Both the position numbers and the translations under genes were made by a program. From Dicyema japonicum (Eukaryota; Animalia; Dicyemida): a stretch of DNA of 64,000 nt. The notes under the pieces are model-generated. The model made no database searches, had not been told where the DNA came from, and was given only the letters and a program-made list of their open reading frames with translations. Positions 1,137 through 42,159 of this stretch are shown piece by piece; positions within the stretch are counted from its first letter, which is position 1; each line of letters starts with the position of its first letter. The stretch covers positions 1,176,410 through 1,240,409 of the forward strand of contig RDEW01000004.1 in assembly GCA_011109175.1 (NCBI GenBank). The letters run 5' to 3'.

Positions 1137-2658
1137 TTATAAAATTGTGGAAAATCTAATGTTCTTATTCGGATTAATTTTATGAACGACGAGAGCTGAT
1201 AGGTCGTTCAAAAAATTAATATTTTTCTTCAAACATTTATTCACAGATTCAGAAAAGTTGTCTGCCAAATCTTGATTGATAATATTTCCAACCTAAAATT
1301 AGTTTTAAATTAACATATTCCTTTAGTCCTGTGAAATTCTTGTTTTTCGCTAAATCATCTCTAGAATCCTCTTTCTTTCCGTTTCCCACAGCAAAGTGAT
1401 CCGTTTCATTACAAAAATCCTTAATCTGTGTTTGATTTACCACGGAAGGCTTTATGTTCTCAAAATCACTTATTTTTCTGGTTTCTTTCGTTTTATCAAC
1501 TTTTTTGTGCAAATTTGTGAGAATAGATTTTCTCACTTGGTCCGTAATGGTAGTTTCCATGTCAACAATCACGTACTCGTGGTCGTTTTCTATTCTTCCA
1601 TTATCCTCGATATCCTTTTTGATTGAAAGGTCGAAATTAAAGGGTTTTGTGGACTTTTGTGGCTGCCAATTTACAAAGCAATTTTGCTCCTTCGTTCTAC
1701 GGAAAATCATTAACTCTGTAAACTTTTTTATTTTAAGATATTTATCAATAAGCGGTAAAATAACTGACTTTTTCTTGGCTTTCTTCAAAAAGGGATGCTT
1801 CAATAAAAGGGAGGCTGAGGGTCTCTAAGAATATAAACCAAATCTGACATCTTTGGGGTCTTTATTCAAGCAAAGGTCAATAAATTGCTGAATTAAGGCA
1901 GAAAAAACAGAAATTGGGAGTTTAGGAGTGTCCCTCAAAGGGATGAGAAACAAAGCCTTCATTACATGCAGATTGTGAAATGGGGGATGACCTGTAGCCA
2001 TTTCTACGCATGTAATCCCAGTACTCCATATATCAACCTAATTAAATCAGAAATTGCTGCCTTGTAATTATATTCTGATTCTTTGATGATTTCAGGAGCC
2101 ATCCAAAGCGGGGTCCCAATGAAGGTATCAAATTTATTGAGAGTGTTTGTGAAGTTCCGACTGAAGCCAAAATCAGACAATTTCACATCGCCCGTAGCAG
2201 AAATGAGGACATTGGGCCGCTATAGTTCAAACTGGAAATTCTACATTTTATATCTCTGTGTATGATTCCGCAGTCGTGGAGATAAGCCAGTCCAGAGACA
2301 ATTTCCTTGCAGAATACTCCAATTTCATACTCTTTGAATATCCTCATTTTTATCATTTCCGAAAGAGTCCCTACTTCCATATACTCCATGACAATCCACA
2401 TGGTGGAATCCAGTCAATTCATAGACATATTACCTGTAGAAAGGCGTGGTAATATGTGACGATGTTGTTACATTTGCATTCCAACAAAATATTGATTTCG
2501 CTTTGGATATTTTCAATCTCAAAGTCGCCGAAATTCAAATCGACGATTTTCACTGCCACGTTTTTTTTTGAATTTTGTTCAACCGCTCGGTAGACTAAGG
2601 CAAACGAGCCTTGGCCAATTTTCTCTCTAAGTTCATAATTCTGAACATTCATGGCCAA
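1137..2658 (-). CDS. STE20-family (GCK-III/STK24-25-26-like) Ser/Thr kinase, 7 exons
   Basis: Motifs: GQGSFALV, VAVK, HRDIK-x-N, DFG, GTPLWMAPE, DIWSTG. Six tiny introns: 2411-2433 GT-TG, 2220-2244 GT-AG, 2038-2060 GC-AG, plus three GT-AG. There is one apparent extra base in the GGG at 2214-2216. Confidence 0.85.
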
Positions 2659-19118: not shown

Positions 19119-20587
19119 TTAACATTGCGTTTCTTCTTAGAGTCACTCTTAGCTTGAAATTTCCGCTTACTACACTAACGAATCAACCAAACCCGCATGA
19201 CTTCAGGAAACCCAAACTCGACGAATTAACAATCTTGGCAATACTAAAAAATCAACCAACAATAAACTGATCAATTCCATTCTCCATGTCCTCCTCAGTA
19301 TAAAACGTCAGGGCCTCCCCTTGCCTCCCGGCTCTTCCAGTCCGTCCCACACGGTGGATATAGTCCACCCCACTCTTTGGCATGTCATAGTTCAGCACAA
19401 AATTCACAGCACTAAAGTCCATCCCCCGTGCGACCAACTCGGTAGAAATAAGCACGTCTATACTCCCCATACGAAATTTCTCTACCACTGCGTCTCTCTT
19501 CCATAAAACTGAAAATCACCTCATTTTTCGCCCTCCCAGCGTGGAGCACATCCATAGTGAGCCCATCATATAGGAGCTCATTTAGCAGCAATTCAGCACG
19601 AACCTTTGAAGAGACAAAAATCAATGCTGGAGTCTTTATCCCCGACTTGATGTGACTCCGGATGGCGAAAAGCTTCCCAATATCGTCGCTTACATATAAC
19701 AATTTGTGGTCGACAGTATTTACAGCAGAGTTACTAAAGGATCATAGAACGTAAGAACCGTTCACCCACGTGCATAATGATGACGTCTTCCAAGTTAAGA
19801 CGGCACCATTCTTCCACTTCCTGGTCGAAGGTGGCGCTATAGAAGCACTTTTTCAACAGGGAATTCGTGCAGAGGCTAAAAATCTCACCGAACTGTTGTC
19901 GAAATCCGCCTTTTCCCGCCTGAAAAAGCTTGTCAGACTCGTCTGCGACCAAAAAAAGAATCTTTGAGAGGTCAACAAATTGGTATAAAATCTTGTTTGG
20001 AGTCCCCACAAGAATGTCTAAATAAGAGGGAAATTTAAACCAGAATTTGAAATTCGTTTCGACGTGGAATTTTTTGTGGCAACTAAAGTTCTCAAAGAAA
20101 TGCCATAGGAAACTCTTTTGATATCCCCAAAAATTTGCATCGCCAGCTCCCACGTGGGCACAAGAACCAAGGCTCGAGGACCACCAGTTTTGTGTTGTTT
20201 TAAAGCGGCCAAAATTGGTAGAACAAAACTCAAAGTCTTCCCAGATCCCGTGGGAGCACATCCGAGGAGATTCCTTCCCTCCATTTGAACAGGGATCGCT
20301 TGCATCTGAATTGGAGTGGGGGTCACAAATCCTAGGGTAGTAAGATTGTTGAGGATTTGCAATGGAAATCTTCGGGAAGTCAGATCCGAAAATTCGCTGA
20401 TGGGATTAGGAACATCCTGCCCAAAGATGTGTATCTGGTGAGCTTTTCGTACTTCCTCAGCATCAGTTGGTCCCCTTTCAGGAATTTTGTCAGTTTTTCC
20501 ATCTTTTAGATCAAATCTGTTGGCATCGGCAGAAAAACGGTTCAAATCAAATTTTGCCCCTTTTGATATAGTTCGAAAAAAATCCAT
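19119..20587 (-). CDS. DDX52: DEAD-box RNA helicase DDX52/Rok1, about 6 exons
   Basis: N-terminus [14 protein letters not shown]; motifs [36 protein letters not shown] and [13 protein letters not shown]. Five GT-AG introns; the last two and the 3' end are tentative. Confidence 0.9.
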
Positions 20588-20739: not shown

Positions 20740-23190
20740 TGTACAGACCACTCTCGGAACTATTATTATTGCCAATGTCTATGTTCTCTCTCCAGGTTCC
20801 TGTGCAAAAGAATTTTCTATGGATTTGTCTGCCCTAGATATGATGGAAAACTTGTTGGTGTCCGGGGATTTTAATGCCAAGCACCCTTCGTGATATGAGA
20901 AACAACCTCCCGACACAAGGGGATTTCATATTATTTCCCAATTAGACAATCTGTCCATTATGAACGACCTAAATAGGAATACACGAACTCCGTATAATAG
21001 AAAGGATTAGATTACCTCGCCGGATATAACGTTATGTTCACCACGGCTTGCCCGCTTATATGCTGATCAGTAAATTATGACTTACGAAGCCGACCAGTGC
21101 CCAGACCATAATCCCATTATGATCAATTGTACACAAATGACGCGGTAAAAACAAGTAAATTTTATGACTATTTTAATGCTGACTGGACAGGATTCAGAAG
21201 ATACGTGGATTCGTCCCTATTTAATTTCCATCCAAATAATTTCAACTCAATCAATAGAGCAGTCTATCATTTTAATAAGGTGATTCTGGAAGGGTGAAAA
21301 CTATTTGTCAGAAAAGGAATTTTAAAACTCACCGAGAAGAAATATGATGCTAGCACAATCAAACTAAGAAAAAAAAGGAATTGTCTCAAACGTAAAAAGC
21401 ACCTAATAAAACATGATAATAATAGAATCCGTGCACTGAACATTAAGAACAACGAAAAGACAAAACTTCTCCAAAAAACAAAACTGGGCCGAATTTCTAA
21501 TCCTATGAAAAACAATTGTTCACTTACCAAGATGTGCTGCGAAATGTCAATAACGCTAAAAACAATACCGAGGGAGACCGTGAACAAAAGATTGATCTGA
21601 ATAAATTTACAAACATTTTCTGAGAATAAGCCACAAACCATATCAAAGGATAGATATTCCTACACACAAAAAACCGAAATCGAAAAGGAAGTATCCAACA
21701 ATGTATGTTCTACCGGGAGATGTCGGACTGTGAACAAAAGATTGATCTGAATAAATTTACAAACATTTTCTGAGAATAAGCCACAAACCATATCAAAGGA
21801 TAGATATTCCTACACACAAAAAACCGAAATCGAAAAGGAAGTATCCAACAATATATGTTCTACCGGGAGATGTCGCTTTGGAAATCTATCGAACAGAGAA
21901 CACCATTCCTATGGACCGGAAGGGATCCCGATTATTCTGTTGAAAAATATGGGCACAGTGGGAGTATCAGCACTAACATGCATCTTCAACTACTCAATCA
22001 ATTTCAACTGTATTCCAGCTATATGGAAATTTTCGAATATTCATCTAATACTGAATCCTGGGAAACCAAGGGAGGATCCTGCTTCTTACAGGCATTTGTC
22101 GCTCTTGTAAGTCCAGAGAAGATTCCTAGAGAGGATGGTTATGACACTCATTTACGCCAGATATAAGCATGGTTTAAAAAGGGAAGATCACTATCACACA
22201 TCTAAATACATTAAAGGAGTCCATAACAAATGGCCTTAACAAAAGACCAGGACAGAAAAAAACGATTGTATGCTCAATTGATATACAGATGGCTTTTGAC
22301 TCTGTTTCGAGAAAAATTATCACGCACAACATATATTCGTTAAACATTGACGCAAACCTGGTTGGGAAATTTTTTTAGTGGTCGACGAGGACGAGTACAC
22401 TGTGGCAATCGGTGTTCCGTATCAAGACTATTAGCAATTGGCGTTCCTCAGGGCTCCCCGTCATTTCCCCTTTTGTTTAACCTTATGATGAATGACTTGC
22501 TACTCCCACAAAGGGACGATGACATATTATTAACGTATGCGGATGATATAGTCATTGGTTCGAGGAATGTGAGTATTATCGAAGCAACGAGAAGAGTAAA
22601 GGACAATCTGAATAAACTTAGTTTATGGCAATGGGAAAATCAATTGACTGATAGCCAGGAGAAGTCGGTGTTGACCCTATTCACACCAAACAGAAGACTA
22701 GGGATAATATCAATTAACGTCACACTGGATGGGAAAAATATTCCGCAAAACAAATTCCAAAAAATCCAAGGAGTTACCTTTGATACCTTAACCTTTACAA
22801 AACACGTCGAAAATATGTTATTGACTTGTAAGAAGATAATCAACTTCCTGAAGGCGTTCTTGGGAAACCCAAGATACAAAAAAGATTTGAGTGGACTGGA
22901 TGTCATACACAAACTGTTCATCGAGTCTACAATAGGATACGCATGTAATATCTGGGAATCTAACCTTGCTGCAACGAATTTGGACAAGATCTGCAATATT
23001 CAAGTGAAGGCAGCAAACCTACGAAGGAAATCTTCCCGTGTGAAAACCTGCCCAGAAACCTTGAAAATATGATAGAGGCGACTGGAACAGTGCCCCTGAA
23101 GGACTCGAATATGCGGACCCCGTCCATTTCAAGGAGACTCATCAACTACTATAATACTGTTGAAAATTTAATGTACCATTAGTATTCATT
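20740..23190 (+). mobile_element. Near full-length degenerate LINE (EN + RT)
   Basis: EN motifs NVYV, GDFNAKH and HNPI are present, as are RT motifs GVPQGSP, YADD and GVTFD. There are many frameshifts. A close relative lies at 44580-45560. Confidence 0.85.
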
Positions 23191-35300: not shown

Positions 35301-35489
35301 TTCTGCGATCCTGGAGTCCTAGATAAATAAACACGCAGGAATAAAAGCCATTTTGGTCTTAGAACCCACAGATTTCAGTTGGGACTGCCCCAGAAGCTAA
35401 GTATCAGTTGGTATAGTGAATTATCCTTCACTCATATATTAAACATTTAAGGTGAGAAGAAAAAACAAACAAGGACGATAAAAACAAAA

Positions 35490-36443
35490 TCACATATTAT
35501 GTGGTTGAGGGAATCGATCAGGAGGAAAGAACATTCCAGGAGGATACATATATCTCATATCAGGAGGTCCAGTGGGCCGTAACATCGGAGGCACATCAGC
35601 AAACATCGTATGCGGACGGTCTGTCTGAGTGAGGGGGTTTTGAGCTGCTAGTATCCGCTCAGCCACGGAACCGTGTCGTTCACCTTTCACGTCCTTCTTG
35701 AAGGCGTAAGAGATCGTTATAGCTCGATTGCACAGATATTGACCGTTCATGGCCTCAATGGCCGCATCCGAGGACTCGAAGCTGGCGAAATTGATGAAAG
35801 CGTACCCCTTAGATATTCCCGTGTCTGGGTCTCGCATAATCTAGCCTTACTTGACTAATATTACCTTAGGCTGTTGCATAATCATTCCAAAGGCCCCGAA
35901 AGTGTCGTGAATCAATTTCTCGTCCACTTCTGGCGCCAGATTTCCCACGAAAATGTTAGCTCCGACGTCGAGGTTCTTTGCATGTGCAGAGGCCTGGGTT
36001 TGGCAGAAAATAAGTTACTTTATTGACTTTTATGGGTTTTCCGTTGAGTTTTATCATACTCATTATTTTGACAGCGTAATCGGCGTCCTCCTCGCTCATG
36101 AATTCTACAAATCCGAAACCCTAGTTACTTTATTGACTTTTATGGGTTTTCCGTTGAGTTTTATCATACTCATTATTTTGACAGCGTAATCGGCGTCCTC
36201 CTCGCTCATGAATTCTACAAATCCGAAACCCTGATGTCTTCCGGTCACTCGATCCTTTGGAATGTGCACATTTACTAAAAATAGGAAGCATAAATTTTAC
36301 CAATAGGTCCCGTCTGGAGAAATAACTCCCATAATATAGTTTCGTTTATTTTTTCATCCAGTCCCCCGACATAAATTGTTGCATCAGATCTTCAATTAGA
36401 CAGCAATACCTTGATTTCTCTCGGTGACAGGACCAGTAGCCAT
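35490..36443 (-). CDS. SF3B4: Splicing factor 3B subunit 4 (SAP49/Hsh49), 5 exons
   Basis: [11 protein letters not shown]|[12 protein letters not shown]..., two RRMs, and [18 protein letters not shown]. Intron 1 (36385-36409) is GT-TG; the other three are GT-AG. A 110-bp duplication (36013-36231) interrupts the assembly. Confidence 0.95.
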
Positions 36444-36789
36444 AAGGCACCACAAGGATAGAAAATTTAAAATTAAAAATAAATATTTAATTTTCCTTAT
36501 ATATTTATATTCAAATTTCATAACATTAAAGTGGTTTAATGACAATCGAATGTTAATCAACACCGAAAAATTTTTACATCTCTTTATCAACACCGAAAAT
36601 CTGGCCTTCTGGCTGAACGTACCTCTGATGACATCGGATCTGAGTTAATCAACACCGAAAAATTTTTACATCTCTTTATCAACACCGAAAATCTGGCTTT
36701 CTGGCTGAACGTAACTCTGATGACATCGGATCTGAAAGTGTGGGTTCGAATCCGAAAGATTGAATTTTCAGCGAAGGAAAATTCTTATC

Positions 36790-39650: not shown

Positions 39651-42159
39651 CTAAACCATATTTTGATCCAAGTTTTCATCATCCTGCTTTTCTCCATTCT
39701 TTGACTTGTTCTCTCCAGATTCTTCACTTTCATTCATTTCGTCATTTAATGGAACATCCTCGTTCGAGGGATTCTGACTGGTTGGAGCTTCCGTATTTTT
39801 CACATCCTGGTCGCTGTGACTCTCGTCTTTGTCTTGAGAAATCTCAGGTGATTCTTCTGCCTCAGTATTAGCTAAAATTCTAATTTATTCTGTACAGTTC
39901 TGAGATTCCTTGATGCATTTTAAATATGTTTCGAATTGTTGGGAATTTTTAATGCAGAACATTCCATTGAAGCCATTTTCTCTCCCATAATGCGCGCGTA
40001 TACTGAAATAGAACGGAGATAAACCTGCTTGGAGCTTCATTTCTTGCTGTCTCCAAATCCTCAGGACCAGCGAGTTTCTGTAACTCAGATATTGCGTCTA
40101 TTTTGCTCACCACAACACACGTCATTATTTTACTGAGCAAATAATTATTCCATAAACCCGGATATCTCGTCGATGAGATCCATGTTAACTTCTTCGCTAA
40201 ATATAAGTTTCAGGAGATCCTCAGTCCCCCTGAAGCTGATAGATTCATGAACAGTAAACTGCTCATCTTGTATCCTTCCCATGATGGAATCTAATTCTTA
40301 GTCTACCAAACCGACCTTGATTTTCGTCGGACAAAATAATTGCCAGGGACTGTTGTATTGGAAAAAAGTACTCAATTTCCTTATCAGCTTCAGCCTGCGA
40401 GCTTGAACCGTGGATTAAGTTGATGGGGACATCATTGAGTTTAAATTTTGCGCGTAAACTTATATTAAGAAGATGAGAACCAGCCAGGGTCAAAATTGGC
40501 AGCATTTATTTTTGGGCCCAATAATTTGCGCCACTCAGAAACTGAGTTATTCTTTTCCAGAATAAGAGCCATTGAAACTCCAGAGGTCATTTTTTCGATT
40601 AGAGTCTCATAGTGGTCCTTTCCCTTTTGGTTTTCATAAAAATCTTCTGCTTGGTTTCTCGACAATTGGATTTCTTTACTCGCAACAACTTTGAATCCTT
40701 GCTGTTGAATGTCAGAGAGGATTGAGTCTGCCCATAACTGAAAAATCAAAACCCTTAAAGTTTGCGACCCCATCAGGCCGAATAAGTGCAAGAGTATGAT
40801 TATTTTTGGACGAAGTATCATCTTGGGAGCCGATTTGAAAGTCGGGGAAGAAATACGAAAGTTCACTGTGGGCTTCGTATTCGTCTGAACTGCCATGGAT
40901 TGCGTTGATGAGTTTACTCTTTCCATATATTGCCCGCACACAAAATAGTTTCACATATTTTACCTGTTGGGCTCAGAGGTTTTAGCTTCCTCCACGTTTT
41001 TGGGACCAATAATTTTACGGATTTCGTTGATGACGTTGGAGTCGGGGGAACTTTTATTTTACCTGTTGGGCTCAGAGGTTTTAGCTTCCTCCACGTTTTT
41101 GGGACCAATAATTTTACGGATTTCGTTGATGACGTTGGAGTCGGGGGAACTTTTTGAAATGGCGAGAATACAGCTTATTCCACTACAAATGTACTCAATT
41201 ACGTCATTGTAATATTCCTATATGAAATATTTTACAATATAAACCTCTCCTTCTATGTGGGTGTACAACTGGCGGGCTTCGACCTCAGTAAGTTGACGAT
41301 CTTCTCGTTTGAGAATCTCTATTCCGGAACTTGTACTCAATTACGTCATTGTAATATTCCTATATGAAATATTTTACAATATAAACCTCTCCTTCTATGT
41401 GGGTGTACAACTGGCGGGCTTCGACCTCAGTAAGTTGACGATCTTCTCGTTTGAGAATCTCTATTCCGGAACTTTTAATCTAAAGTAATTTCAACTTTAA
41501 ACAATTTCAAGTATTTCGTCCAACTTTCCTTGCTGAATGACGTCCGGTTTGACGATAGCCACAGCCACAATTTTGTTGGCTAAGTAAATAAATAGGATAA
41601 CTATGATCCGTTGTAGCCGATTCTGTTTTCTCCACCTGCACGGTCTTTATGTTGGGATCTTTGATCTAACATAGATAACATAGTGGATCACTTCTTTTCT
41701 GACAATGTCTCCACTAATCACCTTGTGTTCTCTTTGTAGCTCGTCCACGATCATTTTACTCAATAACGGGGCGTCTAGTCCCCTCTTTTGAGCTACCAGA
41801 GTTCCTCCCTCTTTTATTGATTTATAATTACAGCATAAAATAGAAAACAAGGCTGGCAACGACCTCTGTAGTGAACGAGCGAATCAACAGTGTCTGATTT
41901 AGCCTAATCTTTGTTGAACTAGACTCTATTTAACATACCACGGCAAATTGTAGTAAATCATCTCCCAATTCATTTTTGATTCTCTTAAAGATGCTCTCAA
42001 TCGCGATACATGGTTGACACCAATCCTGATAAACGTCCACAACTAAATACCCTTTATTGTAATTTATCAACCACAAAGTCCAGGCTTTGAGAGCATAGCA
42101 TTCCAATCTTCCTGATTGTCGATTGGTATTCTTAACTGGGTTTCTCTTTTTCTTGCCAT
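39651..42159 (-). CDS. NME8: Thioredoxin domain + three NDK-like domains (NME8/NME9, TXNDC3/6; dynein IC1-like), about 15 exons
   Basis: N-terminus MARKRETQLRI..VVDVYQDWCQPC..YRGRCQPCFLFYAGG, then NDK blocks IVKPD, VRAIYG..NAIHGS, LIRPDG and LRAKF..NLIHGS. Fourteen introns of 19-35 nt, one of them GT-TG (40941-40963). Duplications lie at ~40956-41152 and 41190-41475. NME8 versus NME9 is not resolved. Confidence 0.85.

Follow-up and report, generated by a model that had tools for sequence, protein, structure and literature searches.

A candidate TG acceptor in the first micro-intron of SF3B4 from Dicyema japonicum, five nucleotides downstream of an AG

TG acceptors and ultra-short introns in described systems

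As far as we know, TG acts as a 3′ splice site only rarely, as an alternative dependent on a nearby AG. In the TG-AG tandem 3′ splice sites of human U2-type introns, TG is always an alternative and never the sole acceptor, and the used AG lies within 28 nt of it (Szafranski et al., 2007; PMC2374985). The first intron of the SF3B4 gene of Dicyema japonicum, as read from its sequence, is similar to these tandems in combining a GT start with a putative TG acceptor and a nearby AG, here at a distance of 5 nt, and also in that position −3 is a pyrimidine and +1 a purine (cTG/A). Unlike in the human tandems, however, the Dicyema TG must yield the productive and presumably main mRNA, and it is the AG that would be unproductive. 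Moreover, two other putative TG introns of Dicyema have no AG at all, and the TG introns considered here are only 23–25 nt long and lack a polypyrimidine tract.

Dicyema japonicum is a parasite of octopuses, and the only other animals that we know to have such tiny introns are myxobolid cnidarians. The ultra-short introns described for dicyemids and myxobolids (Ogino, 2010, as cited in PMC6543705; Lu, 2019, PMC6736024; Hadjez, 2026, PMC13644364) are similar to those considered here in their length of 22–28 nt, a 5′ signal reduced to GTa, conserved positions, and an A-rich zone whose position is fixed relative to the 5′ end. The difference is in the 3′ signal, which in the published descriptions is AG. 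In the searched papers on dicyemid and myxozoan micro-introns, we found no mention of TG acceptors; these papers give AG only. SF3B4 intron 1 fits the dicyemid type in its GT start, its length within 20–30 nt and its shared position, but not in its in-frame end, which is TG. The length classes of Hadjez et al. (2026; PMC13644364) start at 20 nt, so that 20-nt introns may exist, and their observation that conserved A residues lie farther from the AG in longer introns agrees with an A-rich zone at positions 12–18.

The first-AG rule has known exceptions, among them AGs located near the branch site (PMC9284458). As in the AG exclusion zone (PMC9284458; PMC1431707), the AG of SF3B4 intron 1, within a few nucleotides of its probable branch point, would remain unused, and a downstream site would be taken. 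Here, however, the downstream site is a TG rather than the next AG, and the branch point is a predicted one.

Many splicing-factor genes regulate themselves by unproductive splicing coupled to NMD, and SF3B4 is a component of the U2 snRNP. The likeness to such systems is that a spliceosome gene carries two close 3′ sites, one of which is predicted to give a premature stop. By contrast, we know of no conserved regulatory element in SF3B4 intron 1 and of nothing that links it to dosage, and the TG architecture is found also in genes unrelated to splicing.

The SF3B4 locus and its first intron

The analyzed stretch of the D. japonicum genome (64,000 nt of contig RDEW01000004.1, hereafter the window) has a G+C content of about 37%, is rich in decayed LINE copies, and contains cellular genes broken by introns of 22–28 nt. 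For comparison, the published genome is 36.7% G+C and 49% repeats, and its introns are tiny (PMC6736024; PMC13644364). Myxobolid cnidarians are far more A+T-rich, with 29% G+C in Henneguya (PMC13644364).

SF3B4 is encoded by the minus strand, between 36443 and 35490. With a 25-nt intron 1 removed by script, its five exons encode 247 residues in a frame that is open throughout. Exon 1 (36410..36443) starts with the ATG at 36443-36441 and carries 11 codons and the first base of the Asp12 codon, its last base being G36410. It is followed by intron 1 (36385..36409; 25 nt, GT..TG, phase 1, gtattgctgtctaattgaagatctg) and by exon 2 (36301..36384), where RRM1 starts with the motif IYVGGL. Intron 2 (36275..36300; 26 nt, GT-AG) precedes exon 3 (36129..36274), and intron 3, as assembled, spans 35994..36128. 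Exon 4 (35865..35993) contains the start of RRM2 and is separated by intron 4 (35841..35864; 24 nt, GT-AG) from the coding part of exon 5 (35490..35840), which ends with the stop codon TGA at 35492-35490; the 3′ UTR extends to the poly(A) site (35460..35489). A protein search with exon 5 yielded matches to SF3B4 of many animals at identity of 88% or less, with no dicyemid entry among the matches; the short matches of 115–121 aa are exon fragments from other animals.

The RNA evidence is one RNA-like contig of run X5 (731 nt, depth about 320). It covers positions 36301-36354 of exon 2, supports exons 3 and 4 together with the reading frame, and carries a poly(A) tail at 35460, where a run of 20 T is loose. 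Introns 2, 3, and 4 are absent from it, excised exactly as modelled. SF3B4 transcripts are thus polyadenylated, and expression of the locus is high. At intron 3, this contig skips 135 nt, and the DNA contigs of Illumina runs X1–X3 skip 110 nt. The 135 nt are comprised of a 25-nt GT-AG intron and an exact 110-nt tandem duplication (TRF 36013-36232), which is missing both from the X1–X3 contigs and from the X5 contig. Hence, intron 3 measures 135 nt in the window only through its duplication.

Intron 1 starts with G36409 and T36408 (gtattg). It contains an AG at A36391/G36390, ending 20 nt from the 5′ end in the context gAAG, and a TG at T36386/G36385, ending at 25 nt. Both sites, 5 nt apart, have the sequence and coordinates that an earlier note on this DNA had described. 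Only the removal of 25 nt (36409-36385) yields the conserved SF3B4 N-terminus with the same spacing as in human and beetle SF3B4. If 20 nt are removed by cutting at the AG at 36390, the frame shifts and a stop follows after 25 codons, and if the intron is left in, reading stops immediately; both outcomes were obtained by script. Near the junction of exons 1 and 2, reading by eye, we found no GT-AG or GC-AG pair that keeps the frame.

Comparison with other animals leads to the same boundary. Exon 2 aligns without gaps to human SF3B4 over residues 13-39. As this match starts at residue 13, exon 1 and the split Asp codon fill residues 1-12 exactly. The N-terminus encoded by exon 1 matches that of beetle SF3B4 (P0078, MANGPIAERNR). 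In the gene of the beetle Gonioctena (L001, 1501-1680), intron 1 is a 57-nt GT-AG intron that interrupts the same Asp codon between its first and second bases, and the exon following it opens with ATGCAAC, identical to the start of Dicyema exon 2. The position of intron 2 is also common to the two animals, in the same codon and phase. The coincidence of both introns means that both positions are older than the split between the lineages, and since intron 1 is ancient, its 3′ end is expected just before ATGCAAC. Frame and homology thus support the view, proposed in the earlier note together with the opposite frame outcomes of the two cuts, that functional SF3B4 from this locus would need a GT..TG intron 1, with the canonical AG 5 nt upstream bypassed. 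The TG at 36385-36386 would then be the productive 3′ splice site.

Toward exon 1, the RNA-like contig reaches only as far as 36354, which is 30 nt into exon 2, without any loose letters, and no contig of run X5 covers exon 1 or the joint between exons 1 and 2. This end is uninformative about the choice between AG and TG, as a contig broken by a branch at the joint would stop at 36385, and one broken by use of an alternative TG at 36356-36355 would stop at 36355. It may be a coverage dead end of a 3′-biased library.

Distance from the 5′ splice site in the micro-introns of the window

We compiled 31 introns in the window, most of them from reading frames and homology and a few from RNA. All 31 are 22–28 nt long; 28 end with AG and three with TG. 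The AG-ended introns start with GT, mostly GTa or GTt, in 27 cases and with GC in one. A is enriched at positions 12–18 from the 5′ end.

The two TG-ended introns outside SF3B4 are both on the minus strand, both 23 nt long with a GT start, and both placed by homology joins. One is in an NME7-like gene (40941..40963). Compared with the NDK chain 9d5n_CM, the upstream exon ends at residue 191 and the next one starts at 193, the split codon corresponding to residue 192; removal of 40963-40941 restores the block PNS-VRAIYGKSKLINAIHGSSD. The other (2411..2433) is in an MST4/STK24-like kinase gene. There, residues 9-72 of the upstream exon align to positions 13-76 of the MST4 chain 4fza_B, and residues 2-55 of the downstream exon to positions 79-132; removal of 2433-2411 joins without a gap the residues that align to MST4 positions 77 and 78. 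Neither intron has an AG inside or in the next 20 nt, which argues against dependency of TG on AG in this genome. As the assembly carries lesions, namely tandem duplications and, in the kinase gene, a probable 1-nt frameshift, these two TG introns, known from homology only, are less secure than SF3B4 intron 1.

Internal AGs are commonly passed over. Leaving SF3B4 intron 1 aside, there are 18 bypassed AGs in the 30 remaining introns, all ending 4–19 nt from the 5′ end. Three of them are in SF3B4 intron 4, at 10, 15, and 19 nt. The last of these, an AAG, sits 5 nt before the used TAG, and the 24-nt cut is seen in the X5 RNA contig; the geometry, with an AG skipped 5 nt before the cut, equals that of AG(20) and TG(25) in intron 1. 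A bypassed TG is found in the 26-nt intron of the NME7-like gene (41691-41666), where a TG ends at 22 nt and the AG at 26 nt is used, which suggests that AG wins where both are in range.

We propose that SF3B4 intron 1 is an old phase-1 intron reduced to 25 nt in an animal with tiny introns, and that the ordinary (U2-type) spliceosome would remove it by cutting at the TG that ends 25 nt from the 5′ splice site. The 3′ end would be set mainly by distance: an AG at 22–28 nt wins, and otherwise a TG at 23–25 nt is accepted. The AG at 20 nt is probably no true competitor, being nearer to the 5′ splice site than any used acceptor (22–28 nt). The branch point is probably in the A-rich zone at positions 12–18 (A13/14 or A18/19 in intron 1), which would place this AG within about 1–7 nt of it, so that it would be bypassed like the other internal AGs; under the distance rule, it would be invisible to the spliceosome rather than a rival of the TG. 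The simplest history would be one point mutation, from AG to TG, at the former acceptor, without loss of function. Since GT..TG introns are found in the unrelated NME7-like and MST4-like genes with no AG nearby, intron 1 of SF3B4 looks like one member of a genome-wide TG class and not a gene-specific device. We assign this explanation as a whole (an ancient intron cut at TG by distance, with the AG ignored, in a class not specific to the gene) a probability of roughly 60%.

Within it, the idea that distance sets the 3′ end, giving TG at 25 nt precedence over AG at 20 nt, is only slightly more likely than not. The earlier suggestion that a minimum intron length or distance may override the preference for AG fits both the 31 introns of 22–28 nt and the 18 bypassed AGs. 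Still, the length rule is partly circular, as the introns behind it are mostly derived from frames and homology. Moreover, no used acceptor is nearer than 22 nt and the longest distance of a skipped AG is 19 nt, so that 20 nt falls in between and is left undecided by the census. Overall, the sequence, the frame outcomes, the shared intron position, the recurrence of TG introns, and the bypass of an AG in the RNA of intron 4 are observed; from these patterns we infer TG use in intron 1, a rule of distance, and where the branch point lies.

Other approaches did not separate the two sites. A weight matrix for positions −8 to −3, built on 28 acceptors, fails to distinguish AG(20) from TG(25). When the RNA surrounding intron 4 and each of the three TG introns was folded, z-scores ranged from −0.5 to −1.2, with no significant structure masking the AG. 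An ab initio dynamic-programming scan based on codon usage, in which each of the 16 dinucleotides was taken in turn as the acceptor, was uninformative: it gave similar gains for all of them, because decayed LINE copies dominate the window.

If about one intron in 10–20 ends at TG, the choice at the second step of splicing in ultra-short introns would depend on geometry more than on the AG dinucleotide. A TG acceptor in an essential spliceosome gene, with an AG 5 nt upstream ignored, would, if true, bear on how minimal introns are recognized. It would also mean that gene prediction limited to GT-AG would break or drop such genes in dicyemids and perhaps in myxozoans. SF3B4 intron 1 could serve as a ready-made substrate for setting distance against sequence at the 3′ splice site.

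Alternative readings and the state of the assembly

In the strongest of the alternatives, which we still consider unlikely, AG(20) and TG(25) truly compete and both are used, the AG product with its early stop being degraded or left untranslated; possibly, a sizeable share of SF3B4 transcripts is wasted in this way and responds to SF3b or U2 activity. AG is normally much preferred over TG, the TG sites known in human function only when paired with a used AG no more than 28 nt away (PMC2374985), AG(20) is just 2 nt below the shortest used intron of the window, and the AG form has its stop after 25 codons. However, the NME7-like and MST4-like introns, which have no AG, indicate that the use of TG needs no AG partner here, and in SF3B4 intron 4 the RNA contig demonstrates the bypass of an AAG 5 nt upstream of the cut. 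Used introns in the window are never shorter than 22 nt. The A at −3 of AG(20) is a minority context as well, being found in 3/28 used AGs, compared with T in 21/28. Finally, no isoform was seen, the X5 contig ending before the joint, and nothing connects AG(20) to SF3B4 dosage.

Another possibility, to which we give little credence, is that the sequenced copy is broken or non-representative: the acceptor was lost by an AG-to-TG change or by a 5-nt insertion and another allele or paralogue is functional, or the consensus is in error. The window does contain eleven two-copy tandem duplications in 64 kb, one of them within SF3B4 and absent from the contigs derived from reads, as well as the probable 1-nt frame lesion in the kinase gene. 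We compared the window with contigs of runs X1–X3, which come from one sample, possibly the source of the assembly. These span from 36289/36306 to 36578/36600 in a single contig path and differ from the window in this region only at 36446, 36462, and 36549 and by the insertion of one base behind 36461. Between 36385 and 36410, there are no differences and no indel. A base missing after the AG, named in the earlier note as the case that would restore canonical splicing, is therefore not seen in these contigs, and the sequence of intron 1 is not an assembly slip. The X1–X3 contigs diverge from the window at about 1% of positions, which means that they are no mere copy of the assembly, although the same pooled sample may underlie both; thus, another haplotype or consensus carries an identical intron 1. 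Also against a broken copy, the locus is highly expressed with introns 2-4 spliced correctly, the remainder of the 247-aa frame is intact, and the TG ending recurs in other conserved genes.

The least probable reading, raised in the earlier note, is that of a feedback sensor specific to SF3B4, in which a small AG(20) share would track SF3b or U2 activity and SF3B4 output would report the stringency of 3′ splice sites; TG acceptors recur in unrelated genes of the window that have no AG nearby, and we consider this reading unsupported and highly improbable.

In the NME7-like gene (40465-40963, minus strand), a 45-nt GT..AG alternative to the 23-nt TG intron would open a 158-aa frame. This frame would bypass the conserved NAIHGSSD block and the next intron; it may be open by chance or encode an alternative product.

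The kinase gene, also on the minus strand, has a 23-nt GC-AG micro-intron at 2038-2060, whose removal gives the YNYK-V-DIWS spacing expected of STK24-type kinases. At 2214-2244, a 25-nt GT-AG intron (2244-2220) is followed by the catalytic-loop motif HRDIK-xx-N-VLIS, which is in frame only if a CCC run loses one base. This probable 1-nt frameshift is either a consensus error or a real lesion.

The eleven tandem duplications have about 2.0 copies each, with lengths of 92–229 nt and identity of 89–100%. Apart from the one in SF3B4 intron 3 (36013-36232), they are located at 40956-41154 and 41190-41474 and, further, at 21576, 27519, 36552, 39166, 42113, 45882, 47731, and 51301. Two of them consist of an exon end and the first ~7 nt of its intron. 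The duplications are probably artefacts of contig joining or gap filling, or else polymorphisms, and would break naive gene models. The one at 36552-36735, a 92-nt repeat with 97% identity, lies about 110 nt upstream of the SF3B4 ATG, and at its edge the coverage of run X2 becomes twice as high.

A DDX52-like DEAD-box helicase gene (19170-20563, minus strand) contains five canonical introns of 22–25 nt. Its 22-nt intron has two more AGs behind it, at +2 and +4 (gaagagag), and its last intron bypasses an AG ending at 18 nt.
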